A stretch of DNA of 47,302 bases from Perkinsus chesapeaki ATCC PRA-425 (Eukaryota > Protista > Perkinsozoa), in the NCBI GenBank assembly GCA_013115145.1, contig JAAPAO010000248.1, positions 1 through 47,302 of the forward strand. The letters are read 5' to 3'. Shown one piece after another: positions 6,249 through 31,049 of this stretch. Under the pieces are notes generated by a model. It did no database searches. It was not told where the DNA came from and saw nothing but the letters and a program-made list of their open reading frames with translations. The translations under genes were made by a program, and so were the position numbers. Each line of letters begins with the position of its first letter. Within the stretch, counting starts at the first letter, position 1.

Positions 6249-8926
6249 CTAACGACTGGTGATGCCACGACTCGGCCGTCTAGTATCGGTGACAGCGTGG
6301 GGCTCCGACTCAGAGCCTGGTAGAGCACGCATGGCCTGACGAATGGAGTCTACGAGAAGACCCGCAGAGACGGTTTGAGTGTTGCGGTCGAGCCCAAACA
6401 TCAAAACAGAGATTGGAGACCCAAATGGCACACAGGGAGAGCTTTCGCTGAATGAACCTCTTCGGCTAGTCGCCGGTTCGATCCCCGCCAGCGGAATTTC
6501 TCCCGCTGAATAATCACTCTCGCAGTAACCATCAGACCAATAGCCATTGTCACCATCCTCTGTCTCAACAGACGTGCTTGCCTCTGCAACTGCCTCGACC
6601 TCAGGCCAATCCAAATCAGCCGCGTTGGTCACAGCCTCCTCGACATACCCACAACAAGGGCAAGGCGAGGAGCCGGCGGCCGAGGCCGAGGAGCTCGATA
6701 CCGGGGAGCTAGGCGTAGATGAGACCACCGAAGGATCAGCCCATACACCACGAAGGCTCGGTAAGGGATCCTTGAGACACTCAGACATCTCACGGCTTTC
6801 GTCGCAAAGCTTATCAGCTGCCTGTTGTAGCCAATCAGGATGACCGCGCCAATACGGATCCGACCACAACAGAGTGTTAGCAGTGGAGCCGCACAGGATG
6901 ATGCTGTACAGGGAGGGAGGGGAAGTGCTGCGGTGGTGGTCTACACCTGAGAGAAGCGACACTAGAGACACTGATCGACATGATGTTAGCTGCTGCCGAC
7001 CTTCAGCTAGGTCCTCTTCCTCACCACCACTCAACTCTCCTGGGAGATCGACCTTGTTGCCATACTGATCCTCAATCACCATCTGGAGCTCATCACCGCC
7101 CTCTATTCCCTGAAGATTGTGTCGAGGGGAAGCGGAGCTGAGGTGATAGGCTGTTCGGCTGTTGGCAGTAGTCGCAGCTCCACCAAAGAACGCATCATCG
7201 ATGACTAAAATGAAAGACTCCGAACTAGCAGCACCGATTGCGAGCTTACCTATGCCGCCGGAGACCTTCGTCCCGGAAGCGTCCGACAACGGCACCGGAG
7301 TCTGAGTCAAATCAGCCGAGCTCGCCCTTGAAACCGACCGGCTGCTGCCTTCTCGAGGCGTTCCCGTGGGCGACTGAGCAACGGGCGCGGCTGCTGCTGC
7401 TGCAGACCATTTCTTCTTCCAATAGGCCGACTTATGTACTTCACCTGACCCCAGCCATCACCATCAACATCGGCGGCCCTATCCACGGCAGTAGCTTACG
7501 CTCCCTGTGCAGTATTATCCTAAGTGTGCCTATACTAGAGCCTAAAGCACATATCTCCCCTACTGGGGAATTGGGAAGGTCTCTAGGCTCAGCTGTGAGC
7601 TAAATAACAACAGCAATGATATCATCTACCCGTCCAAATGAAGGAGGACCCTACCACATGGTGTTCAGGGGTGACCATTGTCACATCATCCTCACCAGAA
7701 CTGGGCTTGTAATGCCACAAGGATACTTGTAACTTCACAACCGGACTACCGCCACCGCCGGTGCTGCTCGTCGGAGCCCTCTCATGCTGCTCGCCTGTGG
7801 CAGCCTCTCCTGTCACCAAATGCCGATGTCGTGGGCAGTCCCTCTGCTGCATTTCAGGGCGGCGAGGTGTACTAGCCCCACTACGGGGCGTTGTCATGCC
7901 CGCCTCCTTGAAGTAGGTGAAGGCCGGAAGTATACGAGTAAGCGGATAAAGCGAACCTGCAGTAGGTTTCAACTGCTGCACGCCTAGTAACCAGCTCACG
8001 AAGAGCCACAGCCATCCGTCTCAATATGGTCTCATCCTTGCTCCTCAACGACTCAGGCCGGCGGTCATCGGGAGGCTCGTCATCTATTGGAGTGAAATGG
8101 AAGTACCTGTAGTAGTAAAATGGTATCTTCGCACTGTGTAGATTTTCCATCATGACCATCTCTCCATGATAGAGCTTCGCTGCCTCCTCTTTGATGGCGT
8201 GGCCGCCGCCTTCTTGGTATCATTTCCACCCGAGGGGTCTTCAACAACTCTCTTAACTTCTAATGTATAAGATATCTTATTCTTAAATAGTTGGTCCGAT
8301 GCATTTAGATATGATCTGCAACCAAACTTCTCGGGTACCTGCAGACACCCAAGTGGTCCTGGAATAACGACTAAGACCAAACAAAGAAAGCTTAAAGTTC
8401 AAATACGGCCAACGCCGCCGCCGTACATCGATTTGAACTAGAATGCATCTTCAGAGCTTGGCATCAGTCACTTTTCGAAAATGACTCACCAGCGGCAATT
8501 GAAAAATAGACTAAGATAGACCTATTCGACGCCCGCTGATCCCCATTTAGAAGCCCACACCGTTCCTCGGCTCCCCCCTAAGATGCTAGGGGAAGCCCTT
8601 CGATAACCTACTAATAAGGCAAACTTCCGACATGGCACTGGCTCGCCCATGAGGTCCCTTGTCCTCGACTGTGCTATTATCTCACACGCCTTCACAGTGA
8701 ATTCATGATACCTTAACAACACCAGCAACTACTACTAGGTACCTATCACCGATACCACTGTAACCTACGCGGCAAAGAGGTCCTCAGTAGTAAGTCTAGG
8801 CGGCCCACCGGCGGCAACACCGACGATGGCTTGCTGTCTGGCAGGCGCTCCCGGCGAGGGGCGTGGTGGGAACGTTGGGGACTTGCCTCCGCCGTGGTCC
8901 ATGGCCAAGGCTGACACAGACGTCAT
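6249..8926 (-). CDS. ATG13: Autophagy protein ATG13-like (N-terminal HORMA domain plus long Ser/Pro/acidic disordered tail)
   Basis: Hand-spliced: MTSVSALAMDHGG...FAAYHEFTVKACEIIAQSR...ISYTLEV...IMERW|YFHFTP...ILRRMAVALR|SLYPLTRILPAFTYFK (43-nt intron at 7957-7999). These match the Atg13 HORMA hallmarks F-x2-K-x3-I-I-x2-SR, ERW and RSLY-x-L-x-R-x-LPA. The last exon (~6249-7445) contains the 353-aa ORF. Confidence 0.78.
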
Positions 8927-9065
8927 AGGAAGGCGCTATATAACAGAACAATGACGAAGTTGTTGAAACATGTACTGATAAAAGGTCAGATGGTGGGAAT
9001 GTAAAAAATGTGTTATAAAGGGACAAGGCTTAAGGTGGCTTCCGAATCGGAATTTCGATATCCAC

Positions 9066-9699
9066 TCAACCGCCGCCGGTCTCCTCGATGATTATCTAAA
9101 ACACGTATCACCACCCATCAGTTAGCCACGAGCCCATCACTCACCTCCGTGTCACCATTACTATCAACAACTATAACCTCTCCGTTACCAGCAGTGCCTT
9201 CTAGTAGTACCCCTGGATCAGAGGCAGTCTCATCGTTGGACATCTAAGGTTAGCAATACCAAAACACATCGTGAGCTATACCTCTACCACTGCCCCACGG
9301 CTATCTAAAACCACGACCTCCTGCCTCTCTCCAGCAGCAGCACTGGTATGCCGCCGCCGCCGCTCATCCGCATCAACAACAACAACATCTGGGCTACCGA
9401 GAGTTGTGACGCGTGGTCGGTGGTCCTCTGTTATTATAACTTTGTCTACCACCGAGCTAGGCTCCTCAGTTACTCTTTTTAGCACCTACTAGCCAGTCCT
9501 TCAACACTAGCTAGTAGATGGCCTGTACTTACCTCAACGTCACCAAAGTCATCTTCAACAATTATGTCATCCACCACTGTTCGTGGCTCAGCCTCGACGA
9601 CCTCCTCTATGATCTAAAGATGGGACTGTCTAGGCAAAGGGAAGGGTTAAAGTAGCAGTATACCTCCACAGAGTCACCATTACCCAGTATAATGGTCAT
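9066..9699 (-). CDS. Small acidic Val/Ile/Glu/Asp-rich low-complexity protein B (~149 aa, 5 exons)
   Basis: MTIILGNGDSVE|IIEEVVEAEPRTVVDDIIVEDDFGDVE|VLKRVTEEPSS...RGAVVE|MSNDETASD...NGDTE|IIIEETGGG*. All four introns are GT-AG, phase 0, and each follows a GAG codon. Confidence 0.72.
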
Positions 9700-9762
9700 T
9701 ATAGCAGCAAGTGTATAAATCGAAAACTAATAACAAAATCCCATAAGACTACCACTAAATAG

Positions 9763-9825
9763 TAATACACTATATCCATTAGACTACTACTATAATAATA
9801 ATACACTATATCCATTAGACTACCA
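9763..9825. repeat. Short direct duplication (TAATACACTATATCCATTAGACTAC x2)
   Basis: Two near-adjacent identical ~25-nt copies in the AT-rich spacer between the two acidic genes. Confidence 0.7.
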
Positions 9826-9975
9826 CCACTACCAACTTTAATAACAGTACCGTCGAATGCATTATAACTCAAGATAGACCCAATTAAGGTCTCAATAGAA
9901 ACGGTGTTGTTATAATGAAAGCAGGATCAAATACAAAATGATTCTAAACACACTTGTACGCACACACTAGGTTTA

Positions 9976-10529
9976 TCACTCAATGATGGTAGTCTCTTCA
10001 ATAACCACATCATCATCGCCAGGGACAACTCCCTCGACAACCTGAAAACAACTGTCAACTGTCTAACAGACGGCAATCTGTGGGAGGAGCGGTAATGCGA
10101 GATGTTTTGTACGATCTTATCATTTTATACGTCCAATGAGTTCTGCTCGTCGATTGACTAATGCATACCATCTGAGACTAGCGGATAAGTACCTGTGAGG
10201 ATGGTCCATAACCATCATCAATAACAACAGTTTCATCCTCAACAGTAGTTGTCTCCGGCACACTATTAACAATTTCAACCACCTGAAAGCATGCATCTCT
10301 ATGTCACTTCTCTATCCCCGTCACCTACCTGTCCTGGCATACCATCATCAATTACAGTAGTGTCTTCTATAATAACATCATCCGGGCTATAGGTCTCATC
10401 AGTAACGGTAGTTTCCTCAACTACCTCCGGATCTTCATCCACTACCACCTGCCAAAGCCATTACCCCACCTCAGACCGTATCTGGAAGCTCACCTGTGTT
10501 TGGTAGGGTTGTTGGATATAATACGACAT
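9976..10529 (-). CDS. Small hyper-acidic Val/Glu/Asp/Thr-rich protein A (~103 aa, 4 exons)
   Basis: MSYYIQQPYQTQ|VVVDEDPEVVEETTVTDETYSPDDVIIEDTTVIDDGMPGQ|VVEIVNSVPETTTVEDETVVIDDGYGPSSQ|VVEGVVPGDDDVVIEETTIIE*. Three phase-0 GT-AG introns, each at Q|VV. Missed by the ORF track because the exons are short. Confidence 0.78.
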
Positions 10530-10726
10530 TTCTTATTAACGATTAAAAACGATGTGTAATACTGTATTATGAGAACTAGCCAGTGGGAGACAGCCGTTGC
10601 ACAAACAACGCCGGTTTCCATTGATTCGCCACAACAGATGTAGTTTGAGAAACAGTAGCTTTACAAAATGCACAAAGATATAGCCAATCGTTATATTAGT
10701 ATTTTCTGACACCTCTAGCCATACAC

Positions 10727-12030
10727 TCAAGGCCTATAGATGTTATGAGCATACTGCGCACCTGCTGGTCCCCCTTGATAAGGCTGGTACTGCTGCTGTT
10801 GCTGCTGCTGCCCATACACCGGTTGAGCATACACCGGTTGCCCGCCGTATTGGGGATTGCCATACTGCGGCGTAGCTTGGACTGGTTGGGCATACACCGT
10901 CTGAGGTTGGTAGGGTTGAGCATATCCTTGAACAGGTTGAGCATATCCTTGCGGCACCGCTTGGGCATACACTGGTTGAGCAGCCGGATAACCCTGTTGA
11001 GGCCCTGGTGGCGGAGCTCCATATACAGGTTGGGCATAGACAGGCTGTGCCATAGAGGCGTATTGGGAGGGCTGTGGCTGACCATAAGCTTGCTGGGGCT
11101 GTTGTTGACCGTAAACTGGCTGTTGTTGACCGTAAACTGGCTGTTGTTGACCGTAAACTGGCTGTTGTTGACCACAAGCTGGTTGTTGTTGACCGTAAAC
11201 TGGCTGTTGTTGACCATAAGCTGGTTGTTGTTGGGTATAAGAAGGCTGGTAACTTTGTGTCATTGGCGGCTGACCTTGTATAACCTGTCCACGCATCGGC
11301 TGTTGCCCCATCACACCTTGTTGCTGATACATAGGAGTTACCGATTGTAATAGAGGTGGCGCAGACGGTGCATACGCTTGCTGCTGCTGTTGCTGCTGAT
11401 CGCTGGCAAAGCCCTGAGGTGGTGCTGGCCGGTTAGGTGCTGCCATACCCTCCTGCCCATCGCTAACAGGTGGTGGGGGCGCAGATGCAACAGCAGCAGT
11501 CGCCTGCCCCGACACGGCGGGGTCAGCGGATCCCTGACAACTAGGCTGTACTTGGACCCCCGGCGAACTGGCCACTGTATGTGGGGGGTTCATCGGGGCT
11601 GGTGCTACTGATTGGCCTTGGACCTGCTGCTGGGAAGCCACCAATGGCGCTGCGGCTGCAGACCCCGAAACCGCCGTCACCTCGGCAAGAGGTTGCTGGT
11701 GTTGCTGGGAAGCCGTACTCCCTGCAGTGGTCGATGGGCCACCAGTCGTGACCACTACAAACGGCGGTGAAGTGCCCTGAGGGGGATTCGAGCCCGCGTT
11801 CATCGAGTTGACTTGTTCGGTGGCTGCTGCTGGTGCAGAAGGGGCTGACGTGACCGTCACTAAAGGTGCTGATGTATCGGAGGAAGTAGGTCGGGCGGAT
11901 ACCTTGACGACCGGTAACCATCAGCATGACCTGCCCATACTACTACCTGTGGTTGATATACATACGAGGGAGGGGCCTGTGGGGGAGGGACACTTCCTAA
12001 GGGATAACTAGACTGATTAGTCTGTTCCAT
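10727..12030 (-). CDS. Gln/Pro/Tyr/Ala-rich repeat protein (2 exons, ~420 aa)
   Basis: MEQTNQSSYPLGSVPPPQAPPSYVYQPQ, then a 44-nt intron, then VSARPTSSD..., which joins the 377-aa ORF. Contains YGQQQP(V/A) heptads and QPVYAQ repeats. Confidence 0.75.
11099..11235 (-). repeat. Coding minisatellite, 21-nt unit, ~7 copies
   Basis: Tandem units such as CTGTTGTTGACCGTAAACTGG on the + strand. They encode GQQQPVY on the - strand. Confidence 0.9.
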
Positions 12031-12696
12031 AATAAAACAACTAAACATGGTAAGTAGATGAAGCCCCATGAAGCCAAGCCCACGAAGAAGCTCTCAATAC
12101 AACCAACTGATGAGATGAAAGAACGCCAATCTCAAAGGCACCCTACTGAGCAATATGGCATATAATAGCTGACCCAACAAGACCAATTAGCGCCTAGGTG
12201 GCTCCTGTTATACCAAGCTTGATACGAACCGATATTGCCGAAAAGTCCAGTAGGATATTACATCACTTCAAAGCTCCAGCATTATTATTAAACGGTTTGA
12301 TGAATGATGATAAATATAAGCAAGAAATGCTAAGATCATAAATTAAACGATCGACTTTAACATTTCATAATCGAAAACCAATTAACACAATACCGACTGA
12401 TAATGTATATTTTGCACCCACTGAAAGCGATTATCGATAAGAATGCGAAGGAGGAGTTATATAGGAGGTGAAGTGCTCCGGCCTAGGCCTGCAATTATTG
12501 CTGTTCCCTTCGGGCCCGATAAGAGCCAGGATACCTCCTACGCACAAGTCCGCCGAAGACTGCCGTCTCCTCCAAGAGCATCACTAATTCTACCAGCATA
12601 TCTTCCCTTTGATGATGAATAACAGGCAAAAGCAGTAACCCACTAATAGGGAGGAGAGTAAGGTAAGAAGATTCCCGAAACGCGCGTTCATTTCTT

Positions 12697-12715
12697 AATT
12701 TTGTGGCGCAGTGAC
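12697..12715 (+). promoter_or_regulatory. Intergenic motif AATTTYGTGGCGCAGTGAC, copy 1 (copy 2 at 40895-40913)
   Basis: 18 of 19 nt are identical between two spacers, each ~270-280 nt from an ATG. Confidence 0.3.
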
Positions 12716-12980
12716 GCTGAAGTTGTGGCAGTCAGCGTACGGTACTGCTGCGCTGATGTAGACCCGTTTGTCATAGAAGTGGTTCTAGAACCTGTTTTCA
12801 CTTCCAAAACTACTACAGTAGTCTATTAAGCGACCCGGGTAAGTCATTCGCAAAATTTAAAGCCGATGAAAACGTCTAAACGCCAAAACAAGTATCAGTC
12901 TTGGTCGACGTAAGCCAAAGAAGGCCTTTAGATCCTTTTAAGTTGCCCATGGTAGCATTGTTGTCATCCATGCTTCGACT

Positions 12981-14884
12981 ATGAGCAAAGGGCACCGGCA
13001 ATGGATACCAACGATGCCGGCCTCATCCCAACGGCGTGCGGTTATGGCTTTCCTGAGTATGACATTTCTATTATCAATATATTGGCAATCGAGACATATA
13101 AGCCTGACGGTAGATAAGCCGACAGTTGCTGTGGCGAAGGAGGAAATTTATAATAGTAACATCAGACAGGCTTTGGCATCAATAACGGAACCGCGTTTAG
13201 TTGAGACCCCGATTAGCTCAGCATGCCCAAAGAGTTGCCCATCACGTTACTTGAGTGGCAATAAATATGTGTGTTGTAATGAAGGTAGATGTAGCAGAGC
13301 AATTGCTGATTGTCCACCACCTTACGGAATATGTCAACAACAATGTAATCAACATCATCAATCAATCTAAACAATACCATCAGGCTCAGTGAAGGTCCTC
13401 GTAATTAACGAAAGTGCACCAGAACCGGTATCACCCGTGCCCCTATGTCTCGCATTATCCCTGAATTCAGAAGCCCATGGCCGATCAAGCCTGTAGAATG
13501 CCCACTACTGCTAGAGTTGGTGGATCCTCGAACATAGGCAACGATATGAGCGCATATTGGCATGTATGTCTCGCAACCCCTCACCGTGATGACGTGCATG
13601 AGTTGTAGGCCTTGGGGGTGGCTGCTGTGACAGGGCAGTCATTCAGCGCACAAGCTGGTATGGGTGGCTCGACCTTCACCGGCTACTTGCCAACTCAGTG
13701 GCATCCTCCCGCTGACTGGCATGGTGATGCCGAGTAGTGGATAGCACTTCTGCTGTGTCCTTCTTTGCTCGTACCAGGAGAGGCAGAGAAGCATGCGAAT
13801 GCAAACGGCCCGAGTTCCCTCACGAGTGCATCGGGGCTTGGACCGAGGTCCGCGGGCTTATACGAGACTTTGTACTTGGATGTTATTTGGTCCATCTAGT
13901 CCACGATTAGGTTCATGATTCTCTCACCCGAGCTGGCCTAACTCAGCAAGTGAAGGACGATATTCTTCCTGATGAAGTATTTGTACATCAACGCTGCGCC
14001 TGGGAGACACTCCTTCTACATGGTCGGATCTAGGCAGCAGCTTCCGTGATTCTAGTAGTACTTCAGGTATGTATGGTCCAATGTCATTCTCGGTATTTGG
14101 CCAAGCGATGAGGGCGACAACAACTAGGGTAACATTTATCGAAGGAAAGGCTGGAGATCCTTGGCTCTGTGTCAAAGTCACATCATGCATCTTATTAATT
14201 GTATTATCCCTGAGTTAACCTTAGATACGCGAGAGTATCCAAGACTATATCAGAAAGGATCATCCAAACGTATCTTTTAGAGTTCTTCTTGGTGACACCA
14301 ACCCCCAATCAATCTCACTTGACTTTGCCAGGCTGGTGCAGTGATCATCCCTCGAATGCTTATCATTATTTCCCTATCCCGTAGGTTTATGCTCCAATAT
14401 TAGTTCGCGGCCCATCATCGTTTAATTTATGGGCAGCACTTGCCAATCGTGGTCAGGTAACCGTTCACTGTCTCCCCTCCAGCCCTCATCTCTAAATTCA
14501 ACTTCACTTTTATTAGCAGTTGGTATCTCCTTGCCATAGAGTAGCACATCACCACCTCGTCGAGTTATACGGCTTCTCGGCCCATTCCCGCTTTTCTCAG
14601 GTCTATTCGCCTCCTAATCCTGAGTCATGGGGATGGTCTACTGTTGAGTTGGGCAGTGATTGGCATTGGGTTACTACGGCCAGAGTGCTTACTAGGAATA
14701 TCGCCAAAGAAGAGGTTGGTTACTGCGGTTGCGGTATCAAATGCTTTCATAGCTCAAACTGAAGCGTCCAATAGAGAAAAAGCCACGTAAGGATGGTGAG
14801 CCAGCATGGACAGATATCTTCCTCGAGAGGGCTCTTCCTTGGCTGCAGGAGGATCCACGTTGGTTCAAGCATGTTAATAACTGA
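12981..14884 (+). CDS. Type II membrane protein, fucosyltransferase (GT11/GT23 superfamily)-like, multi-exon
   Basis: Short cytoplasmic tail plus TM (AVMAFLSMTFLLSIYW) and a stem. Later exons give GSSNIGNDMSAYWH, DEVFVHQRC...YGPMSFSVF and APILVRGPSSFNLWAALANRG, ending ...ALPWLQEDPRWFKHVNN*. These resemble, in order, the GN-x-M, H-x-R and S-[ST]-F-x-W-x-A motifs of GT11-like enzymes. Confidence 0.5.
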
Positions 14885-14970
14885 CAATAGCTGCTTATTT
14901 CTTCACCACATCATTAGTAATTGTGTTTATCATCAGTACCATATAGCCTTCATCAGTCTGACCAGTTACC

Positions 14971-16335
<1,365 letters not shown>

Positions 16336-16576
16336 TGTCTGCTACTGGTCTTACTGTGGATTGATGATTTATGCTTGAAATTGTTTCTCACTGAGAGCTG
16401 CGGATTTGCGTTGTAAGTGGCCGTCATTCATCGATCGACGAATATCTTTGGGAATCGCTTAATAAAGAGTTGTAGCCCAAATACAGTGGGTTTCCCTATT
16501 AAGGCTATTCCTGTGCATTCGGATCCTTAACCATCCATCAGCTCCCCAGTAGGTCTCCCAGCTATTCTGCAGTGCA

Positions 16577-16640
16577 TGTATAAAGATCGGATATAAACAT
16601 AAGGATATAAATATGTATAAAGATAAGGATATAAACATCG
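16577..16640. repeat. AT-rich degenerate minisatellite ((AA)GGATATAAA-like units)
   Basis: GTATAAAGATCGGATATAAACATAAGGATATAAATATGTATAAAGATAAGGATATAAACATCGG, in the spacer where + and - gene blocks converge. Confidence 0.6.
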
Positions 16641-17281
16641 GGTCTTACGAGTACGGAGAAGTATCATGTTTCAGTGAAACTTAAATCTGTAAACGCTCAG
16701 TGTCCTAGAAGTTCTAGGCTAGAGCGCATTGTTGGACGCATGCCGAGATCCTAACGCTGCCGCAGAGGCTTCCCACCGTACACGAAGCTTCGACGAGGCC
16801 GACAAGCGCCGACCATTCTATATCGGCTAAGCCCATGCGTCTCTTCAACAACTGACAGAATCGTGCAAGACTGCTGCGAAAACAGTTTTAAACTGTGCCT
16901 CGAACACCGTCGACCACCGTATGGGGTTCACGATCTTCGGACAGTTTTTTTAAGAGGTTATCGTGCTCCGTTGGGTGCTGATGCCGCTGTTGATTGGTGA
17001 CTCTGCCGTCGATGGGCGGGTTGATTGAGATTACTTACAAACACCCGTGAGGCATACCACCGGCACTGTCAGAGTGAATAGCAGTAGTTTCGTCATCAAT
17101 GAGGCAACTATCAAGTTTGTTCAACATTGTACAAGCCTCGATCGAGACCGTCTATGTACTCTAGCAACGAGACTTTCAACACTGTACAAGTGACAACGCA
17201 AGCTGCAAACCGAAGAGAAAGTCCGAGGAGAGTCATAAGGCAATAGTAAGGGTATTTTACAATGGGATCGTTCAGCTTCGT

Positions 17282-17500
17282 TCACGACCGCCTTCGCCAC
17301 AGGGCTAGAATGGTATTCTTGTTTTTCATAGCCTAACAAAGCATACACTGACACATTACCGCAACCACAGAGCTCACCATAGCTGTTATCGGGGCCACTA
17401 CAAACACCAACATTATGAGGGCTCCAGTGAGATATGAAAGAAATGAATAATCCAAGTCTGCCGCCGCCGGTGCCGCTATACTATTATCAGCTGCTCCCAT
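17282..17500 (-). CDS. Candidate two-exon single-TM microprotein (~57 aa)
   Basis: MGAADNSIAAPAAADLDYSFLSYLTGALIMLVFVVAPITAM, then a GTGAGC...TTAG intron, then AMKNKNTILALWRRRS*. An alternative frame continuing to ~17121 or further cannot be excluded. Confidence 0.35.
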
Positions 17501-17592
17501 TTGTATATGTTATCAAAACCTGCTAAAACTGATCACTGTACTGTACTGAACGCAAAACACTATTCCACACCGGGAGCAACAACAGCAACAGT

Positions 17593-18544
17593 TCATGCTT
17601 CATTGGCCTCATCTTGCACATTGTCCTCCTCATTACCTACACAACAGATACGCTGCCCGCACGCCCCAGCCTACCCTCAAGGGTTTCACCATCCTCTGTA
17701 GGCTGCTGATCATCATCAGTGCTCTCCTCCTTGGAAGCCTCCTCCAACACTTCACCTTCCTCGACAGCATACCTGTAAATAGCGTTGATACGCTTTACTG
17801 CAGCTCTCTTGGACCTATTCTTCCATGCGCCCTTGTAGAAGAGCCAATCCGCCATCTGCGGTTCCCCTGCAAATGCCGCCAGATGTTGCACAGTCATCCC
17901 TGCTGAATCCGTGCTGTTCATTCTGAAGCAGACTTCTTCCACTTTCACCAGCCAGGATCTCTCACATAGCTCCCTTCGACACCAGCAACGCCACCGCATC
18001 ATGCTTTCGGGCGCAGACGGCTTGGAATAAAGCTGACTCACCGGCACTGAAGATGAGGCGAGAATGCGCAGAGGGCTCATTGACCACGACTTAGTCGTGA
18101 CGACTACCCACCCATCTAGAGTGTTAATATCTGCACTGCTCTCCAAGAGTAGCTCCACTAATGCTGTATGGCCATATCTAGCGGCTTCATGCAATGGAGT
18201 GCTGATAACATAATAAGATATTAACACGTTGAACAAGTAACTAACCGCCCATCTCGATCCTTGAAGTTAACATCAGCACGCTTGTCGATGAGATATCTCA
18301 CTGCGGGCTCATTGTTCTTCCAGGTAGCCTCCCAAAGAGCGCTAAGGTAAGGCACCACCACTGCGGAGCTAGATAATAACGTAGATTATACATACCTTCT
18401 AAAGTACGGTTTTTCACTGTAGTTGAGGCCATCTTGGCCTTGTATTCGGACTACTTCGCTGGCCAGGAATCTTACACCTTTCTCGCCGTCCATCATACCA
18501 AGTCGCGCTTGTTTCATCAACTCTTTATTGTTCTCCAACGCCAT
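17593..18544 (-). CDS. Ankyrin-repeat protein with acidic tail, multi-exon
   Basis: ALWEATWKNNEPAVRYLIDKRADVNFKDRDG, TPLHEAARYGHTALVELLLESSADINTLD, SAGMTVQHLAAFAGEPQMADWL. Confidence 0.85.
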
Positions 18545-18760: not shown

Positions 18761-20447
18761 TCAAACTGGGCTTCTGATATCATCATCCTCATCATCACCG
18801 ATCGACTCCCTATCGACTTCAGAGGTGTTACCATCGCAGGTAGACTCTCCAGTGTAGCAAGAATCTCTGTGGCAGCAAGCATCCTGAAACATGCACGCTA
18901 CATAACGATGAAAGGCACAACAGAATTCACCTTCCTTTCATCGGAATTAAGATCCTCCGGAGAGCTTGCCTCCAACTGGAAGGTAGAGTGTGTTATGCCC
19001 AACTCCTGCGCAACTTTTTTAGCTTCCGCCAACACCGCACCTAAAGCGCCTGCATTTTAGTAAATAACACAGCAGCTCAACACAATCTACCGCAATTGTG
19101 GCATCCTTCCAGAGCAAGATGGGCTGTACAGATCGGGTTGGCAGATCCAACGTTCCAAACATGCACATCATGAACCTGGTTACGGTAACCGTAAGATACT
19201 TCAGAGGTTGGAAAGAGCTTACACATTGTACATGCTGAATATTCTTAAGTTGTTTGGCAAACCTAGTGACATCAACGTCCTCTGGGGCCTTTTGCATAAG
19301 AGCACTCAAAGACCGTCTCAGAGTACCTGCACAACAGTGAGCAGCAGCATGGGACAAGGTGAGACGGTAAGTATTACGGTAGGTTGTAAGAAGGACCAGT
19401 ATTGAGAATATTATAGTACAAATGGGATCAAAGTAACTAATAAAAGTGTTAGATAGGGAAGGATAGTAATAATAATAATGATGACACTACTTCCAATGAG
19501 AGATACCATCACTAGTGTAGCCAATGTCAAATGGCTTCCACCATATCAGTACAGCAGCAACAATAACTCCAATAGACTGAACCTGTGAACGTACTAATAG
19601 CATACCACCGCCAGCCTCATCATCATCAACAAGCCGAGCTACTACTTACCAGATCCCCAAGTATATGAATGAAAGCAGCATCCAGCGCAAGGTTGCGTAT
19701 ACGACGACTTGGAGGAGGAGAAGTACGATGGGCAGATTCATGACCGTCATTACCTGTATTTATAGACTACAAGGCTGCTGCTGTCTTTTACTATAATACA
19801 TTTATTACCTTCCTCATCGACGTGCTCTGAATCATTATGGCCATCAATGTGACCGTGACCATGACTATGCCCATGACTATGCCCATGACTGTGATTGTGA
19901 CCAAGCACAAGCATCATGATAATATTCACAACAAGGCCAGCAACCTGATGTATCGTTAACCAAGAAGCTAGGGAGCGAGTAGCATACTGCTAAGGAGAAC
20001 ATCACTGTGCCATTGACATCTTCAGGAGTAATAAACCTCTTAATAGCCTCGACAAATAGTATGATAGTCGTTGCCCAAATAATCATTATCGATATCAACG
20101 CTCCAACAACCTCAGACTGCCAAAACCCATATCTGCCAGTACTTCACTAAAGCACAACCAACAACAACTACTACGTGTAATATGAGTTGGCCTTGCGACT
20201 GCTTAGCTTTATAGCAATCAAAGATACTATAAACCCAGATATATCTGATAGAATATGAGCAGCGTCAGCTACCTAAAAGAAGCCAGCTGTGTCGGATGCA
20301 TACAGGGAGCTAGTTTACTATGGCGAGCGATCTTGCGATGATGCCTCCTACAACCTCTGCGATCATAAAAATTGTCGCTATAGCTATAACAGCCAAGAGC
20401 CTTCGCTTTATACGCTTTAGTTCATGTTCACGACTATTACGACCCAT
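18761..20447 (-). CDS. Cation diffusion facilitator, Zn-CDF (ZnT/MTP1-like), paralog 1
   Basis: [26 protein letters not shown] (TM2), His-rich loop [27 protein letters not shown] (TM5), [12 protein letters not shown]. Confidence 0.9.
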
Positions 20448-20714
20448 AGCTGCTGCACTCATTCAAGGTGAAAGAAAAAGAGTTGACCCTGCCATGTGAT
20501 ACATTGATGAGAACACAACAAGCTGCAAGACTGTACTCGGTGGGAAATGCGACGAGTTAAAACCCACTACTATAGTTCAGATATAATACGGTGATGCCGA
20601 TAGCGTCTGGAAGGCATCGGTGACGCTTATGGTGGATGGAAAAGTGACACAAGGCACAGCAGACTCCTCAACGGCGATGACTTTTCCTGGCTCTTGTGAT
20701 TAAAGCAATATATT

Positions 20715-22745
20715 CTACATCATCAGTGTTGTGGCTGAAAATGGGACAATCTCCAGGACCCATATTAGATATTATAGTTTACCTTAAGCAATGGCGACGA
20801 GCCCTTCGGTGAGACTATAACAACTGGTGCTGATATGGCCTCTGATGGAGCACCACATGTATCATCTCCTTTATTACATGCTTGATTATGACAACATGAA
20901 TTCTACAAAGTGGAAATAAACCCATGTGCTATCAAACTTATCTACGCCTACTACGGAGAATACCATAACCCATCTAAAAGTGTGATATTATACCGTGCAT
21001 AATAATATATAAGCCATTCCAAACAATAAAGTCTATTGTGCCCTGGTTATTATACGGTCTCCCTCTAGAATCCTTTAGTACCTGTAGCCTGTCCACATCG
21101 ACATCTTCAGCTCTTGCCTCTAGCTGAAAGGTGGTATGGCTTATACCCATATCGTTAGCTACCTTGGTAGCTTCATCTAGTACTTGACCTAAGCCATCAT
21201 ATTATACTACCCATTATCCAGTACTGCTACTACTTACTGCAGTTAGAGCAGCCTGATACAACTATATGAGCGGTACATATAGCACTACTAGAGCCTATGC
21301 TCCATACATGGACATCGTGTACCTAAGTTGATAGTAACCAAGACTATCCTTTACTGCTACTACCCCCTTACACATTGGACATGCTCCACATGCCTTAGCT
21401 TAGTCTGTAGTAAATCCACATCTACGTCATCCGGTACTCTTTGCATCAGGATATGCACTGATTGCTTTACAGTCTCTAAAAAGAAGGAGTATACAGGTGA
21501 ATGATAGTGGTGAATGCAGAGGAGGAAGACTGCCTACTGAAGGTGGTGAACATAACCAGGATCGAGAATAGTACGGTACAAGCCGGATCTGCGTAGCTGA
21601 TCAAAAAGCCGGTGCAGTACAAACACTACGTAAGCGATACCTACTTCCATTTTGAAACACCGTCAGCATAGCCGACATTAAAAGGCTTCCAATAGATGAG
21701 CACGGCAGCTAGCAGCACTCCAAGGGATTGTATCTTAGAAAGGTTTATGGCAATACTGTGGTGGTGGCGTTGGGATACTTACTATATCTCCAAGGACATG
21801 TACCACTGCTGCATCTAGGGCAAGATTGTGGCTTTCTGAAGGGAAGGCTTGAATAAGCTATAGAGTATGTATCTTACCGTGGGAGTGACTGTGACTATGA
21901 CTGTGTCCCTCTTCAACGTCGGAAGCCTGCTGCTTCCCATGGGAATGGCCATGAGAGGCTCCACCATGGGTGTGGTTATGGCCAAGGGTTGCCATAAGGC
22001 AAAAGTTAACAAGCAAACCAATCAACTGGAAATGGCACAGTACTGACTGGTACCAAGTTGAGCGCTACTTACCGCCATAATGCTCATAAGGCCACCATTG
22101 ACCTCCTCCAGCTTGATGAACCTCTGTATGGCCTCCCATAGTAGGACACCTGTCATGAACCATACTATCATAACAGAGAACAAGGCCCCTAGGATCTCAG
22201 CCTGTCGGTAGCCGTATCTGCGGGAAGATGTGGGGGAAAGTTGGTAGAAAAGGAACTGTTACGTGTATTGGGATGTAGGGGCTTTGGCTGCCAGAACAAC
22301 AGCGAAGAGAGATACAGCAAATCCTGATACATCAGACATAATATGGGCAGCATCAGTAACCTGATCAGAAGAAAGAGTGGTATGAGATAATATACCAAGT
22401 GCCTTACAATAGCAAGGGAATGTGCTAATATACCACCAACGATCTCGAGTATCATGAAGAACACAGACAGGCATATAGCCCTTCGAAGCCTCCGCTGAAC
22501 CTATTTGATCAACCTTACTATAGTAATAGTTATTAACCTCCTACATCCCTGGCCTGTTCCATCTCCTCAGTAGTCTGAGCTCTACCTCTATTAGGGGCTG
22601 GTACTATCCTTTCCTTAGGTATTGCTACTGCTGTTAGACTTGTATTAGTTATACTATTCCTTCCCTTAATAGCAGCAGGATGAGTATGATCTGATGGCCC
22701 CTGTGCATCGAGTAAAGGGGATTTCAATTCAGAAGGGGATGTCAT
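20715..22745 (-). CDS. Cation diffusion facilitator, Zn-CDF (ZnT/MTP1-like), paralog 2
   Basis: FFMILEIVGGILAHSLAI, TDAAHIMSD, loop GHNHTHGGASHGHSHG...GHSHSHSHSH, AAVVHVLGD, DMGISHTTFQLE. The 3' end is approximate. Confidence 0.9.
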
Positions 22746-22986
22746 AATTAATAACTAACTGACACCCATTACTGTCTTTCCCATTATACTACCCATCGGG
22801 CTAGAAGTCAGCAAGTCACAACGGCACCTCTCTTCCCACCACTATTCTGCTAAGTATTTAGCGCTCGCCCTGTGGCCTTTCGCCCTTCACCGTGAGTCTT
22901 CTTCTTCTCCTTCCCGTCCTATATTAGCGATATTATTCTATGCAGTTCATTCAAGTGGCATTCGGCCACTTCGATATTTGTTACCA

Positions 22987-24198
22987 ATGAGATTTTTTGA
23001 ACGTACCCACACATTTCCATACGACTGGGAAACATGTAAGTTAGTAGCGGGCGGCAGCGTGATGCGTTCCTGTTGAGCTCGGTTTAAGTATATCCATGGA
23101 TTCCGGGGGTGTATTATACACCATTGCTTTCATTAGTAATAGGAAAGATACTCGACGAGGTTGACCATGCAAGATGCATGATATGTCGAGAATTGTTATT
23201 TTGACATCTTCCAAATGAGAGTGAAACATCAGGTACATCGGCTTGGTGGACCAAGTATCCTAATCCCGAGCAGGCTCATGTGAAGGAGGTTGACACCCTT
23301 TGCCGAGAAGTGGATAAGGACTCAGGGGTACCATCTCACCCCTTCATGCAGTGTAGAGGTTTTCTATAGAAACTGCGAGTCCGACGATTGTTCTATCTCG
23401 AGTACGATCTCCCAAGTTGGGTTAAAGTGATGTACAAAAGGAATATGGAGGTAGTGACCAGCAGTGTGCTAGTGCCGCATTATCGATATAGGGATATGCT
23501 ATTGAGGACGTCGAATGTGATGTTAAGAAGAAGGTCCTCGTGGCAAAGGGATCCAACTACACCTTCAGTAGGCCTCCGCTTCCTCCTCGATAGCCTTATT
23601 GAACATATCTGCAGGCAGCTTTTTCCGCATGCAGGAGACCATCACTTACGAGCGCCATCCAGAGAACCCAGAGTAGGTCACCAATCACTCTTGGCCGCCT
23701 AACATTCGCCTGTCAGGTGGACCCTTTACCACCAACGTATGAATTTTACCGTATCTGGCTTAGGGGTACTCTGCGGTAGACTAGAGCAGGCAGCCCGAGA
23801 CAGCTCGGCTCAGAAGGCCCATAATGGTAATAGATGGAGGTGGCGTGGGAATGACGGCTTTGTAGGAGTCACTGTCATGCACAAATTAATAGAACGTTTA
23901 CATCTTACTAACTGGAAAGCCGACTTGGATTCCTGGAGGCAAGAGGTAGTAGCTGGGAATAGAACCCAGGACCGCCTGGATGAGAGTACGGATGCTTAAC
24001 CAGGTCTCCAAGATGACTGATGATGCCTTGGAGAAGGGCCGCATTACCGCAGGAGAGGCGGCCGAACGTCTGAGACGGTTCCAATCGGAAGCGAAGGGTC
24101 GCATCCAACGGGTGGAGACCTCCTTCATCAACCGAGTTGCCAGAGCTGCAGTAGTACCCATGCCTTTCACTCTGACCAGAGAAGCTGCTGCTCTTTAG
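22987..24198 (+). CDS. PRELI/MSF1 (Ups/SLMO2-like) mitochondrial lipid-transfer protein
   Basis: MRFFERTHTFPYDWET|CTSAWWTKYPNPEQAHVKEVDTLCREVD...RRLFYLEYDLPSWVK matches the PRELI start (F-x-x-x-W-E-x-V-x-x-A-x-W-x-KYPNP...HV...D). Has a helical C-terminal extension. Confidence 0.85.
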
Positions 24199-24541
24199 GT
24201 TCACTGTGATGCCGGGGAGGTTGCCTCAACTCTAATAGACCATAACGATTTCCCCCCTTCACCGTCGCCCGAGTCCACTTCGGACTAGGGCATTAGGTGG
24301 CCGTATTAGGGATCATGCTTGCTCTATTATTACTAATACTATCGATGCCTATGTAATTTACTTTTTCCAGCCATCATACACCCCGGCACTATATCATGTT
24401 TCGTGTGCCCAGGCGTATCTTAGGTCGGGTTTGACCCTCTGCATCATTTAAGCCTTACCATTATAGTGGATGATGATTTATTTATGTGTTGAGTTCAAGT
24501 TGATCTATAGAGTGTCTTTAGTACATCCCCTTCTGTAGTCC

Positions 24542-27500
24542 ATGTTTGGAGGGGGAGGAGGCCTATTCGGGCAGCAGCAACAACAGAGTTCACAAGGTGG
24601 AGGCCTCTTTGGAGGAGGAGGAGGCATGTTTGGCCAGCAACAGGTAATACTATATCCTGCTCACATTCATACCACTCCTTTCCCAGAACACTGGAGGAGG
24701 GCTCTTTGGTAGCAGCCCACAGTCGGCTCAGGGCGGCGGTCTTTTTGGAGGTGGCAGCACTTTCGGCCAGCCGCAACAACAGCAACAACGCCCAGGAGGT
24801 CTCTTCGGAGGTGGAGGAGCATTTGGTCAGCAGGTAACCCCTTCGTCTCCTATCCAGCTCTTTACTACCTTTGTCAGTCCTCTGGCGGTGGCCTTTTTGG
24901 TGGCGGAGGAGGAGGAGCATTTGGCCAACAACAGAATACAGGCGGAGGGCTATTTGGCCAGCCGGCAGCAGCAGCAGGAGGAGGAGGAGGCATGTTCGGC
25001 CAGCAACAAGTAAGCCTTCAACTCGTTCAACACCAAATGGCTACCTCTTTTTAGAGTAGCGGAGGAGGCCTATTCGGAGGCGGTGGTGCCTTCGGTGGTG
25101 GAGGAGGGGCGTTCGGAGGAGGTGCGCAAAATGCAGGAACAGCGCAAGTGAAGTATCAACAGGTTATCGACCATGATTCACGCCTCAAAGTAGTCACCTG
25201 GTGGGCGGCGCTATTATTGGACCCTTTCTGCCACTCAGCTCGTTTCTATTACTGCTATGGATGCTTACAAGGGCAAGTCATTCGAAGAGCTACGGTATGA
25301 GGACTATGCTCAGGGTAGAGGGCCAGCGGGGGCGGCCGGGGCTACCGGAATGCAGCAACCTCAACAGCAACAGCAAGCTGGTAAGCATTCCGTCCCCTCT
25401 GCTCTCCACACTCCAGCATCAGGCGGCCTGTTCGGCGGTCAGCAGCAACAACAGTCTGGTGGAAGCGGGCTCTTTGGAGGTGGAGCATTTGGTCAGCCTC
25501 AACAACAGAGTGGTACTAACTGGGGAGCATATATGATTATATGCTTTATCAGGTGGAGGCCTATTTGGCGGAGGTATGCAGCAAAACACCGGCGGAGGTC
25601 TATTCGGCCAACAACAGAACACAGGTGGCGGCCTCTTTGGCCAGCAGCAAAATACTGGCGGTGGACTCTTCGGTGGAGGGGGAGGTGGAGGGATGTTCGG
25701 TCAGCAAAGCTCAAGTCAAGGTGGTCTATTTGGAGGGGGAGGTGGTGGAGGTGGCCTGTTTGGTCAACAGCAGTCTTCCTCACAAGGAGGTCTCTTTGGT
25801 GGAGGTGGCGGCGGCGGTCTCTTCGGCAGTCAGCCTCAGAGCAGCCAAGGAGGATTATTCGGCGGTGGAGGCGGTGGTGGACTATTTGGTCAGCAGCAGT
25901 CCTCGCAAGGAGGGGGTCTATTTGGTCAACAACAATCAAGTCAAGGAGGTGGCCTCTTTGGTGGTGGCCAGAACACTGGGGGCGGACTATTTGGAGGAGG
26001 CCAGGCAAGCGGTGGCGGTCTTTTCGGGTCGACGCCCAACACTGGTGGTGGTCTATTTGGTAATCAGCAGTCCTCCGGCGGTGGCCTCTTCGGAGGTGGG
26101 CAACAGTCTTCTGGTGGTGGACTATTTGGTGGTGGGCAGGCTGGTGGCGGAGGACTCTTTGGCAACACCCAGAGCAGTAGTGGAGGTGGCCTCTTCGGGG
26201 GTGGCGGCGGCGGTCTATTCGGAGGTGGTCAATCCTCCGGCGGTGGCCTCTTTGGTGGTCAGCAGTCGTCATCTGGCGGAGGCCTATTTGGCGGTGGCGG
26301 AGGAGGAGGTGGCCTGTTTGGCAACCAACAGAGCAGCAGCGGTGGCGGTCTATTCGGCGGTGGAGGAGGCGGAGGTCTCTTTGGCAACAAGCCTTCGACA
26401 GGCGGTGGCCTCTTCGGTAACACAGCGTCATCCGGTGGTGGCCTGTTTGGTCAGTCCTCCAGTGGTGGTAGCCTCTTTGGAGGTGGAGGTGGCGGAGGTG
26501 GTCTGTTTGGCAACTCGACATCCTCGTCTGGTGGTGGACTGTTTGGTGGTGGCGGAGGAGGCGGCGGCGGGCTCTTCGGTGGTAACAAGGCCACCGGAGG
26601 CGGCCTATTCGGCTCATCCCAGCCCCAAGGAGGAGGCCTATTTGGTGGTGGCAATCAGCAACAACAGCAAAGTGTGCAACTCGCCACACCAGCGTCATTG
26701 CCTGCTCCCCCACGACCAAGTGGATTGCTCCTTCCTAAGGAGGTTGATAAAAGTTTAGCATCATACCTCTGGAAGGAGGAGCCCAAGAGCCACGCTGCAC
26801 CTGCGCCCTCCACCAGTGGTAGTAGCCCTCAGACCCCACCACCATCCAGTAGGTCACCAGGCCTTTCACCACGCAGTGACAGGTAGTAAGGAGGGTTGCA
26901 TTCCCCAGCGCCATCATCACCGAGCTCGTCGTCTTTTTCAGGCTGTCTCTTCCTGGACCAGCACTCGGCGGTGCTCCACCATCACCTGTTAATCCATCAT
27001 CTATGCGGCACCTCTATCTTCGAGGTAACCCATCCTCACCAGGAGCATCAGCAGACCACGTACTCACTCCACGGAGCGCTATGACACCTAGAGCCACAGG
27101 CCGAGCCAGCACCATTAGCGGTAGTCTCGGCGGGGTGGGTTAACCCTATTTCATTGTCAGGTGGTGGCAGCACTAACCTATTGCTCGATGATGGCACCCT
27201 TCCTTTGCGGAACCCCGATGCTATCGGAAGCTCAGCCTTTGTCGCCCTAGCCGAGTAAGGTTACCCCCTACGGTTTCGCCATACCACCATTTCTTTAGGC
27301 ATCACCCTCATCACTCCAGCCCGGGACCAAGCAGCTTCGAGTATGGTTCGATGACGTCCCCGAGGAGATCACCACCAGCGATGACCAGCGATTACTTGGC
27401 AACTTCTTCCCTTGTGGACCACGAGCCTGATGTTATTATCACTCGACCGGGAATCATGTAACCTTTCTCACCCCGAACCCGCTTAATCAATGCTAGTTAC

Positions 27501-28248
27501 TCCTCATGTGATCGGCGCCGCTCACTGTCCGCAGACCGTCGACGGTCATCGTCATCGAGTGCAGGATCGTTGAGGCACCGCGAGCCAGCACCAAAGAGTA
27601 TGGTGCCCAAGCTGAAGGACCCAAACATGTGGTAGGTTACCAAAACACCATCAACAACCTTAGGGACCATTGTAGGATACGGCCATCGATTGATGCCTTA
27701 TCTCTGATGAGTGAGTCCGAGCTAGCACGCGTGGACAACTTGGCCATTGGACACTATTCCTATGGGAAGATCACTTGGCCTGGTAAGAATGCCATCCTCC
27801 CAATAATGTAATAGGTTAGACCTCTTAATAGGTTTGACCGATGTCCGCTATTTGTCGGTGGATGATACTGTGCAGTTCACATCCGCCAATGTGACCGTCT
27901 TTCTTGACGAGTCGGGTACGCGTTCCCCGTACCGTTTGGACCTAATATCTTGTGTATTTCAGTCCGTCCACCTATCGGTAAAGGCCTTAATAAGCCCGCA
28001 GTAGTTGAACTGTATGTGAAGCCAAAGAACATGAAAAAGGCCCGACAACAGGCAGAGAAGGTAAGCCTTCTTCTTCTCCTCCTCTTCACTAGCTGTTAGT
28101 GTTCCTCTTGTAGTACATTACGCGAATGCGTCAATTGACTGAGGAAATGGATGCAACGTTCTTATCGTATGATTTGGAGACTTGGCGGTTCAAGGTCGAT
28201 AACTTCGGCAGAGGGCCGGAAGCCGGTTCCCCTCCTCCTCTTCGGTAA
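24542..28248 (+). CDS. NUP98: Nup98-like GLFG nucleoporin (FG repeats, GLEBS, C-terminal autoproteolytic-type domain)
   Basis: Dozens of GGGLFG(Q) repeats; GLEBS-like [22 protein letters not shown] (~25255-25320). The C-terminal domain runs [34 protein letters not shown]...[15 protein letters not shown]...[18 protein letters not shown]. Confidence 0.9.
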
Positions 28249-28341
28249 CGCCTCCTACTCGTGATGACATCTACGTACATTTATCTCGCTGATTGATACT
28301 GTTGAGTTTTAACACAATATTAAAATAAACATGCAAGAATA

Positions 28342-30018
28342 CTATATTATGAATGACGTACTGTACGGACCATCCTCGGGAGATGAAGGCAATTCTACTA
28401 TCTCAATCATGGAGCAGCTACTGGAAGGGGCAGCAGTGGAGGGGGTGCCAGCAAAGCTCCCTTTGAGTCTCTTTGGCAGAGGCGTGCAAAACTCCAATAG
28501 GGAGGATTGCCTTTTCCCGCCCGACTTCACCCCGCCAGCAGCAGGAGCATCACCGTTGATCTGCTTTATTCTGTTACGAATGGTCTCAACACGTTTGGGA
28601 TTGTAATTGAGTCGATTAATGAGAAGGTCTGAGAGACCTTCTATATTCACTGCGGGCTTGGGAGATAAATCGTTGATAGTTGATGGCTTTAGGAAAAGCT
28701 CCTTGGCCTCTTGGTAGGCCCAGCCAATTGGAGCTTTATAGGACTTGGACCCTTCCAAGGCCGACACTATAGCCGAGATACTGCCGTGCTTTAGGAGGAG
28801 ACCATGAGCTCTATGTGGGCCTATCTTGGGGATGCTAGGACAGTAGTCACAGCCGCATAGTATTGCAAGCTCTGCTAGGGCCTCCGAGGTCAGCCCGAGG
28901 CTATCAAGGACAGCTGAGCGGGAGATCTCCCTCACGTAATTGCCATCGTCACCCGTATTGGACCCTGAAGAATGAGATGGCGGCTGCTGGACTGCGGTGG
29001 TGTTACCTTTATTAAGCTCGAGACGATGCAATGTGTTGGAGAGGTTCTTCAGTACCACCTCGGCCCCAAAGACGATCGCATCGATATCCTCCGTTGAAAC
29101 TGCATCAGCCTTGCCAGCAGCACACAAAGAGGCACAGGTGGCCTCGGCCTGATCGTGAAATGTGATAGGTAAGATAGACAGTGTGGGTACTTCAGCGGGA
29201 GCTATGACATATTGACAACCAAGGCACTTAACAACTTCCACAATGTACTCCTCTTCGTTGCTCAACTGCCGAGGGAAGCCTGTGGGCGGTGGGAGCAGTA
29301 GCAATGGTGGTGATGGAGATGTAGCTGATGGAGGCGATGACCTGCTAAGAGCTAGACTGAATGGGACACGTCCCTACCTACGCATCGTCTATGCCTTTGG
29401 CATTATGGACCTCACCGAAGTCAAGCCTTCTTGCTACACCAGGAAGTGGGGGAAATTTACTGGAGGCCCCTCTTGGTTCGCACCTGAAGAGAGTTCCTCG
29501 AAAATGCAATAGCGCGGGTGGTGCTCCTCAACTGATATTCGGAACTGGCCGCGCTCTGTGGGGGTGGGGAATGTCGATTCTCACTGCTCCGATTTTGCTT
29601 GGCTGCGTTGATCCTCCGCTGCCTGAGACACTCGTACTTCATCGCGGGTGGATGACCATCAAACACAAATATCGGTTGTATGCCTGAAATGGTGATATGC
29701 TACCAGCCCAACGTCTGCGGCGTCTACCAAGCTCGAGCATTTTTATAGTCCTATGGAGGAATCCATGTACTCCAGAGGTGCATTCTCCCTGATGGTTAGT
29801 TAGCATCCTATCTTCATACCGTATTTTGTTCTTAAACTGAAACCAAGTCTGCATGTTGGACGGGAGGCAGAGGAGAAGGTCATCATCATCATCACCTGGT
29901 ACATCCAAATGGACGCATCGATCGCTAGCCTCTTCCCTGCGAACTCTTCCGGTCGGCATTCCCTGATCGCCGATGGTGCTTGAACTCTGAGGAACTCATA
30001 GAGCCCTTTAATCCCCAT
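28342..30018 (-). CDS. FEN1: XPG/Rad2-family 5' nuclease, FEN1-like
   Basis: MGIKGL...LAIDASIWMYQ, VFDGHPPAMK, APAE|AEAT (42-nt in-frame intron), STEDIDAIVFG, LCGCDYCPSIPKIGPHRA, and a C-terminal PIP box KRQSSLLEF. Confidence 0.85.
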
Positions 30019-30228
30019 TGATATAACAATGATTTAAAGGAAGAGTGGTATATCAACACAAGAGGAAGGGGAGATAAATAATTCATAATATTGTTGTGAT
30101 GATGTTAGTATGCAAAGGTCAACTGCTGTTAAAAATAGTTCAATTGAAATGCTTCAGACGATACTGGGTAAATGGCGAACTTGTTGAGCCAGGATTGCCC
30201 TCGGAGACCAGCCACCTGAAGCCAGTTC

Positions 30229-31049
30229 TCAAGCTCTTAGAGGGACGACGAGCTCGACCTCACCTGAAGGGCTACGATGACGCGCTGAGGAGTCCTCGGT
30301 AATCTTATTAGATATTTCAAAGTCATAACAACTACGGCTGCCAGCCACACCAGGCTTAGGGAGCTGTAGACGGCTTGATTTCAACATACGTTGGCATACA
30401 TACCACACCACACCAGTCGCTGCTTCACCGCTCCTTATTGCCGACTTCACCTCCCTTGACATGCCCTGACTGGGATGATGACTAGAAGAGGCAACTACGT
30501 GGATTGGTATGGTCCATTGCTCAAACATCTCACGGTTATCGGATACACCGGAGAGGAAGTCAGCGATGACATTGAAGGTCCAAGAGCTAGCAGCTGCTGC
30601 TGTTGCAGCTGCGCCCCCGGTGATGGGTGTGCGGTGCTTTGGCACGAAGAAAGAGAGGACGATCGAGGCCTTCCGCTCAGGGCGGCGCTCAAGGAATCGG
30701 CAGAAATCTTGCAAGGCAGTCTTCACGGTCTTATCCACGTGGGGGTCATCCGACTTGGACTGAGAATGAAGAAATAGCTACGAGACGGTATGAGTTAAAT
30801 ACATAGTGAACATCAATAACATCGCTTGACACAGTAATGGGCTCTACACAGCTTTGGCCACCTATGCTTCGACCCAACAGAATTGTGTGGAGTATCTGAA
30901 GGAGGAGGCTATCCTCAAGCCTGGTGATCGTGACTGTAAGCACTCACCGCAGCCAGGGCTTCTTTTACATGGCCCATCGGCAATTGAATCTCCGGGCATA
31001 TGTGATACTCTACAGCAGAAGCCCTCCGAATCGCACTACCAGATGACAT
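30229..31049 (-). CDS. ATG101: Autophagy protein ATG101-like (HORMA domain)
   Basis: Spliced: MSSGSAIRRASAVEYHICPEIQLPMGHVKEALAA|ILHTILLGRSIG...DVIDVHY|SKSDDPHVDKTVKTALQDF...ASIVLSFF...SSWTF...FEQWTIPIHVV. This parallels human VEEAMLAVLHTVLLHRSTG...DFIDFTY...MSLEFY...WPF...WEVWTVKVHVV. The C-terminus may extend by one more exon to ~30140. Confidence 0.8.

Follow-up and report, generated by a model that had tools for sequence, protein, structure and literature searches.

The window analysed here is the entire 47,302-base contig JAAPAO010000248.1 of the Perkinsus chesapeaki assembly GCA_013115145.1. P. chesapeaki is a clam parasite, and Perkinsus as a genus belongs to the parasitic alveolates, related to the apicomplexans. 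The window contains one gene for ATG13 and one for ATG101, the two HORMA-domain subunits of the ATG1/ULK complex. A preliminary description of this DNA had placed divergent versions of both genes on the same strand, about 21 kb apart. Both are indeed present, each on the minus strand, with 21.2 kb between the start of ATG13 and the stop of ATG101, and the outer limits given for the two genes hold, including the ATG101 start codon at 31049.

The two genes were compared with loci from two further species. For P. olseni, the comparison used locus L002 on the 405-kb contig JABANP010000007.1, and two Logan contigs from run SRR12548988 (L001 and L004) were assigned to P. marinus, because the partial FEN1 protein P0005 of P. 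marinus ATCC 50983 is 100% identical to L001. Profile and database searches were carried out with the exons one by one or with a P. olseni orthologue. The curated Pfam cut-offs are 26.5 bits for PF07855, the ATG101 family, and 25 bits for PF10033, the ATG13 family.

The exon structure of ATG101 was fixed by locus alignment with P. marinus. Its four exons are separated by GT-AG introns of 52 nucleotides (nt; GTGAGT...CAG), 43 nt and 48 nt. The start codon and the GTGA donor of exon 1 are both kept in P. marinus, and identity to this species upstream of the ATG is only 44%. At the other end of the gene, the exon 4 peptide GWSPRAILAQQVRHLPSIV is identical to the last 20 residues of the P. marinus open reading frame (ORF) P0001 (tblastx 95.8%), and the NCBI model of this region likewise ends at 30154, matching the exon 4 stop. 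The TGA at 30229 is not the end of the gene; a 48-nt intron leads from exon 3 to the short, conserved exon 4. In its interior, this structure departs from the one given in the preliminary description.

Exon 3 of ATG101 passes the PF07855 cut-off alone, with 29.4 bits over profile positions 47-134 of 158. Upstream of it, a stop-to-stop piece scores 16.9 bits (positions 13-45) and the exact exon 2 scores 14 bits (positions 16-43), so that the matches of exons 2 and 3 are collinear on the profile. Among the 20 nearest ESM-Atlas clusters, 19 are ATG101 families. The protein thus resembles the ATG101 proteins of human and S. pombe in passing the profile, in consisting of a single domain of ~250 residues and in having an ATG13 partner encoded in the same genome. 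A further possible likeness is the sequence SSWTFNV. Its W-T-F (approximately residues 125-127) is located in the loop that joins two conserved strands, and P. marinus P0001 has the motif as well. It may correspond to W110/F112 of human ATG101 and is probably the WF finger. The Perkinsus protein differs from its human and fission yeast counterparts in an Ala/Gly/Thr-rich loop insert ahead of the WTF motif and in its C-terminal exon, the sequence of which P. chesapeaki shares with P. marinus.

For ATG13, the exons were derived from the collinear tblastn matches on the window of the P. olseni protein FOZ60_014661 (P0002; 633 residues), which had been reached through the large 3' exon of the window gene. 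The resulting model begins at the ATG at 8926; an alternative ATG in the same frame (8902) agrees better with the starts in P. olseni and P. marinus. All six introns are GT-AG, with lengths of 57, 273, 50, 43, 55 and 55 nt and consistent phases. The stretch ELVTRRAAVETY was also considered as coding sequence and was ruled out, as it constitutes intron 4 (7999-7957). Intron 2 (8339-8611) is exceptional in its 273 nt, the other ATG13 and ATG101 introns of the window measuring 43-57 nt. Alignment gaps imply that it is much shorter in P. olseni and P. marinus, and the extra sequence has no match elsewhere in the window or in the comparison loci.

The family assignment of ATG13 runs through the P. 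olseni orthologue, which UniRef names an ATG13 N-terminal domain protein. Residues 83-191 of this protein match PF10033 with 37.8 bits (E 2e-9), 12.8 bits above the cut-off, and exons 2-6 of the window gene are collinear with its residues 41-295 at 80% identity. Neither this PF10033 match nor the PF07855 match of ATG101 is of the strength expected by chance. Of the 20 ESM-Atlas clusters nearest to its HORMA part, 17 are ATG13 clusters, from nematodes, arthropods and plants. An orthologue is also present in P. marinus. The architecture is that of ATG13 as well: a conserved, globular N-terminal region of ~260 residues (exons 2-6) precedes a Ser/Pro/Ala-rich tail of ~400 residues with short conserved islands. 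These islands are VIDDAFFGG, MVIEDQYGNKV.LPGE, PSLYS...DPYW...CLKDPLPSLRGVWA, PCPCCGY, DLDWPEVE, YWSDGYCES.YS and PFGS...DRN..TVSAGL.VD. In contrast to known ATG13 proteins, the HORMA region of the Perkinsus protein is broken by a lineage-specific low-complexity insert of ~50 residues in exon 5, and sequence comparison does not allow its tail motifs to be matched to the motifs known to bind ATG1, FIP200 or ATG8. We consider the identification of ATG13 via its P. olseni orthologue sound but indirect.

Both genes are conserved across Perkinsus in the manner expected of coding sequence. Nucleotide identity to P. olseni or P. marinus is 68-83% over ATG101 exons 1-4 and ATG13 exons 2-6, and 46-62% over ATG13 exons 1 and 7. 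Indels are multiples of three in the ATG101 exons (69-80% identity, indels of only 3 or 6 nt) and in ATG13 exons 2, 4, 5 and 6; exon 2 has none at all (75-78% identity to the two species), and exon 5 has only indels of 3, 6, 15 and 18 nt. In ATG13 exon 3 the gaps are paired and measure 2 or 8 nt, each compensating the other. Across the introns of both genes identity is 35-65%, and most of them contain indels whose lengths are not divisible by three; the ATG101 introns have 35-48% identity and indels of 2, 6 and 8 nt. These alignments show ATG13 and ATG101 to be intact and subject to purifying selection in all three species of Perkinsus compared. Because of this, a functional ATG13-ATG101 pair is the natural reading. 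The corrected gene models are given in Table 1 together with other features of the window.

Table 1. ATG13, ATG101 and further features of the window. For the ATG13 exons, the last column gives identity to the P. olseni orthologue P0002, with the residues matched in brackets.
Feature	Position	Strand	Description	Comparison
ATG13 gene	6249-8926	minus	7 exons, 2142 nt, 714 codons, no in-frame stops	
ATG13 exon 1	8769-8926	minus	poorly conserved N-terminal leader ending TTEDLFA; GTAGGT donor	48.6% (8-39)
ATG13 exon 2	8612-8711	minus	start of HORMA region, YHEFTVKACEIIAQSRTRDLMGEPVPCRKFALL	93.9% (41-73)
ATG13 exon 3	8157-8338	minus	VPEKFGC...SSIMER-W	65.6% (74-133)
ATG13 exon 4	8000-8106	minus	YFHFTPIDDEPPDDRRPESLRSKDETILRRMAVAL; within the orthologue stretch matching PF10033	100% (135-169)
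ATG13 exon 5	7655-7956	minus	SLYPLTRILPAFTYFKEAG..., low-complexity insert, then VVKLQVSLWHYKP...VTPEHHV	71% (171-262)
ATG13 exon 6	7500-7599	minus	LTAEPRDLPNSPVGEICALGSSIGTLRIILHRE	100% (263-295)
ATG13 exon 7	6249-7444	minus	Ser/Pro/Ala-rich C-terminal region of ~397 residues; coding to 6252, stop 6251-6249	47%, E 2e-69 (tail)
ATG101 gene	30154-31049	minus	4 exons, 250 residues, no in-frame stops	
ATG101 exon 1	30948-31049	minus	34 residues, MSSGSAIRRASAVEYHICPEIQLPMGHVKEALAA	tblastx 81% identity
ATG101 exon 2	30803-30895	minus	ILHTILLGRSIGGQSCVEPITVSSDVIDVHY	79.6% nt identity, no indels
ATG101 exon 3	30264-30759	minus	bulk of the HORMA domain, includes SSWTFNV	
ATG101 exon 4	30154-30215	minus	G-GWSPRAILAQQVRHLPSIV; coding to 30157, stop 30154-30156	
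NCBI model	36682-30154	minus	1,680 residues; EF-hand, PF03372 (Exo_endo_phos), PF07855	
401-residue ORF	31278-32483	minus	between the 562-residue ORF and ATG101	
562-residue ORF	32553-34241	minus	PF03372	
Q/P/Y/G-repeat ORF	10727-11860	minus	377 residues, QQQPVYG units	
beta-CASP/metallo-beta-lactamase gene	4244-6076		downstream of ATG13	

We propose, with a probability of roughly 0.85, that ATG13 and ATG101 are here ordinary nuclear genes, each with a transcript of its own, for the HORMA-domain subunits of the ATG1/ULK complex, and that their spacing is coincidental. Several observations weigh against parts of this proposal. The PF10033 match of the P. olseni orthologue is confined to the middle of the profile (positions 66-160 of 233), and the window ATG13 exons, searched singly, have no match in Pfam. 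Neither ATG13 nor ATG101 matched a solved structure when compared by sequence with the PDB at E-values up to 10, and in this both differ from the ATG13 HORMA domains and ATG101 chains for which structures have been solved (phmmer in the case of ATG101). A single-sequence AlphaFold2 prediction of residues 36-300 of the orthologue gave an uninformative model, with a mean predicted local distance difference test score (pLDDT) of 34.5 and a predicted template modelling score (pTM) of 0.24. The search of sequencing runs listed none that covers the locus, so the splicing and expression of the two genes are predictions. The analysis covered this one contig, and a complete ULK/Atg1 module with ATG1 and FIP200/ATG11 would be an extrapolation from the pair. 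The Pfam, PDB and AlphaFold2 results on ATG13 could be taken to mean that the gene at 6249-8926 encodes a lineage-specific protein rather than a true ATG13, and that the PF10033 match, which spans just 95 of the 233 profile positions, arose by chance or stems from a different HORMA-like fold. We regard this as very unlikely, given the margin by which the orthologue exceeds the curated cut-off, the predominance of ATG13 families among its language-model neighbours, the combination of a short globular N-terminus with a long disordered tail that is typical of ATG13, and the presence of an ATG101 partner gene in the same genome. Highly improbable, in our view, is the possibility that ATG101 is no gene of its own and forms the C-terminal domain of a 1,680-residue protein with an EF-hand and an endonuclease/exonuclease/phosphatase (EEP) domain. 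One NCBI product does carry all three signatures. However, the ATG101 frame opens with its own ATG, which is conserved in P. marinus and preceded by poorly conserved sequence; between the EEP ORF and ATG101 there is a separate 401-residue ORF that terminates at 31278; and nothing corresponding to the 562-residue EEP ORF was found in L001, the syntenic contig of P. marinus. For these reasons we read the NCBI model as over-merged, and it probably represents several genes joined by the predictor. The length of 250 residues also fits a stand-alone ATG101, the nearest ATG101 clusters in the Atlas measuring 131-188 residues.

The remaining alternative concerns the linkage. The preliminary description had considered that the two genes might be a retained ancient neighbourhood of paralogous HORMA genes, and a co-regulated pair would be a variant of this idea. 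The shared strand and the distance of 21 kb speak for it, as does the fact that both P. marinus contigs are collinear with the window to their ends (L001 with 40.6-18.8 kb, L004 with 8.7-1.7 kb), so the genus may share the arrangement. Synteny among congeners is, however, expected for any neighbours and is silent on ancient linkage. Annotation by NCBI, the annotation of P. olseni and Pfam scanning together place at least eight unrelated genes, distributed over both strands, between ATG13 and ATG101. They are two small acidic genes, a Q-rich gene, a 395-residue-type gene, triosephosphate isomerase (TPI), an ankyrin gene, a 785-residue gene, PRELI/Nup98 (on the other strand) and a GEN1/FEN1-like nuclease. 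In human and Arabidopsis, ATG13 and ATG101 presumably lie on different chromosomes, which also counts against an ancient neighbourhood. Comparison of the ATG13 HORMA region with ATG101 detected no sequence similarity, as expected, because the two families are taken to have parted before the last eukaryotic common ancestor; the eukaryotic HORMA families have been described as monophyletic (10.1101/514885). Synteny within Perkinsus is good around each gene (L001 at ATG101, L004 and L002 at ATG13). None of these three sequences spans both genes, and no overlap among them joins ATG101 to ATG13. The P. olseni locus is collinear with window positions 16.3-1.7 kb, and its similarity is lost just beyond TPI, where L002:1-2569 has neither similarity to the window nor an annotated gene. 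There may thus be a synteny break between P. olseni and P. chesapeaki at this point. With a genome that we take to be some tens of Mb, the probability of finding two given genes no more than 22 kb apart is roughly 0.05-0.1%, a reasoned estimate on an assumed genome size and not a computed test. This pair was picked post hoc, however, and with hundreds of windows from this genome and about a hundred gene pairs in each, some partner pairs would be expected by chance, on admittedly rough assumptions; the proximity does not demonstrably exceed this. An ancient or co-regulated neighbourhood is accordingly scarcely probable. Least probable of all is a linkage conserved across Perkinsozoa and other myzozoans, as a relic of the tandem duplication that gave rise to both autophagy HORMA proteins or as a constrained, co-regulated neighbourhood. 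The linkage as such has no demonstrated meaning.

The placement of ATG101 within the 1,680-residue model has a practical consequence, as the gene may escape homology searches that restrict protein length or compare proteins over their whole length. Indeed, our length-limited word search for ATG101 found only a P. marinus ORF fragment, because the merged model is too long. The two upstream ORFs that are included in the merged region deserve a brief description. The 562-residue ORF matches PF03372 with 36 bits and has no tblastn counterpart in P. marinus L001, which may reflect either an insertion specific to the P. chesapeaki lineage or a loss in P. marinus. The 401-residue ORF has no Pfam match. 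Visual inspection shows a segment (GVWKNAGGYVSTVYVDKKRIYGPLRRTMEEAARDRE) that looks like an AP2-type DNA-binding domain, and the ORF is partly conserved in P. marinus (tblastx 69%).

Further observations were made between and beside the two genes. The ankyrin gene of the window begins 1.3 kb past TPI. The Q/P/Y/G-repeat ORF has a weakly similar counterpart in P. olseni. P. marinus L001:14800-16000 matches two places in the window, at ~22.4-21.2 kb and ~20.3-19.1 kb (minus strand), which suggests an internal duplication or a repeat within the 785-residue gene. Downstream of ATG13, both P. chesapeaki and P. olseni have an intact beta-CASP/metallo-beta-lactamase gene, and no database record was found for the exact product of the ORF in the window. 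In P. marinus, L004:4640-6000 contains only a weak C-terminal remnant with 35% identity to residues 447-579, which could be the result of gene decay or replacement.

If the two proteins act as their counterparts in the known ATG1/ULK complex do, ATG101 would bind and stabilise the HORMA domain of ATG13. The resulting heterodimer would help to recruit downstream factors via the exposed Trp-x-Phe finger of ATG101. Binding sites for the ATG1 kinase, for a scaffold of the FIP200/ATG11 type and perhaps for ATG8 would be provided by the conserved islands in the ATG13 tail, and these interactions may be under the control of TORC1. Dimer formation, partners and regulation are drawn here by analogy. 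In this model, the 21-kb spacing on one contig would be a coincidence without functional meaning.

With respect to what is already known, both Perkinsus proteins are further members of known families. The preliminary description had presented the pair as the best candidate for an undescribed system in the window, which does not agree with the records: each protein belongs to a Pfam family, the P. olseni orthologue of ATG13 already has its name in UniRef, and PF07855 is on record for the NCBI model that covers ATG101. Its term of an animal/fission-yeast-type module is likewise a misnomer. Most eukaryotes, with the exception of budding yeast, have ATG101 as a constitutive subunit of the Atg1/ULK complex (PMC4824606). 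The pair is therefore no peculiarity of animals and fission yeast and represents the default eukaryotic state.

The finding gains its interest from the parasitic lifestyle of the organism. Non-unikont parasitic protists have been described as lacking components of the Atg1 complex such as Atg13 and Atg17 (PMC5376053; PMC8161075), and Perkinsus is not mentioned in the main texts of these two papers. Among the papers searched, none deals with ATG13 or ATG101 of Perkinsus. Perkinsus differs from the repertoire reported for parasitic protists in that it keeps at least the ATG13-ATG101 pair. TORC1 and TORC2 have both been reported as kept in Perkinsus (PMC12467227), which fits regulation of ATG13 by TOR.

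Taken together, the ATG13-ATG101 pair is kept in a parasitic myzozoan, a setting in which reviews report the subunits of the ATG1 complex as generally absent, and this is a result of modest value. In combination with the reported retention of TORC1 and TORC2, it makes Perkinsus a reasonable organism for dating the apicomplexan loss of TOR/ATG1-dependent autophagy initiation.

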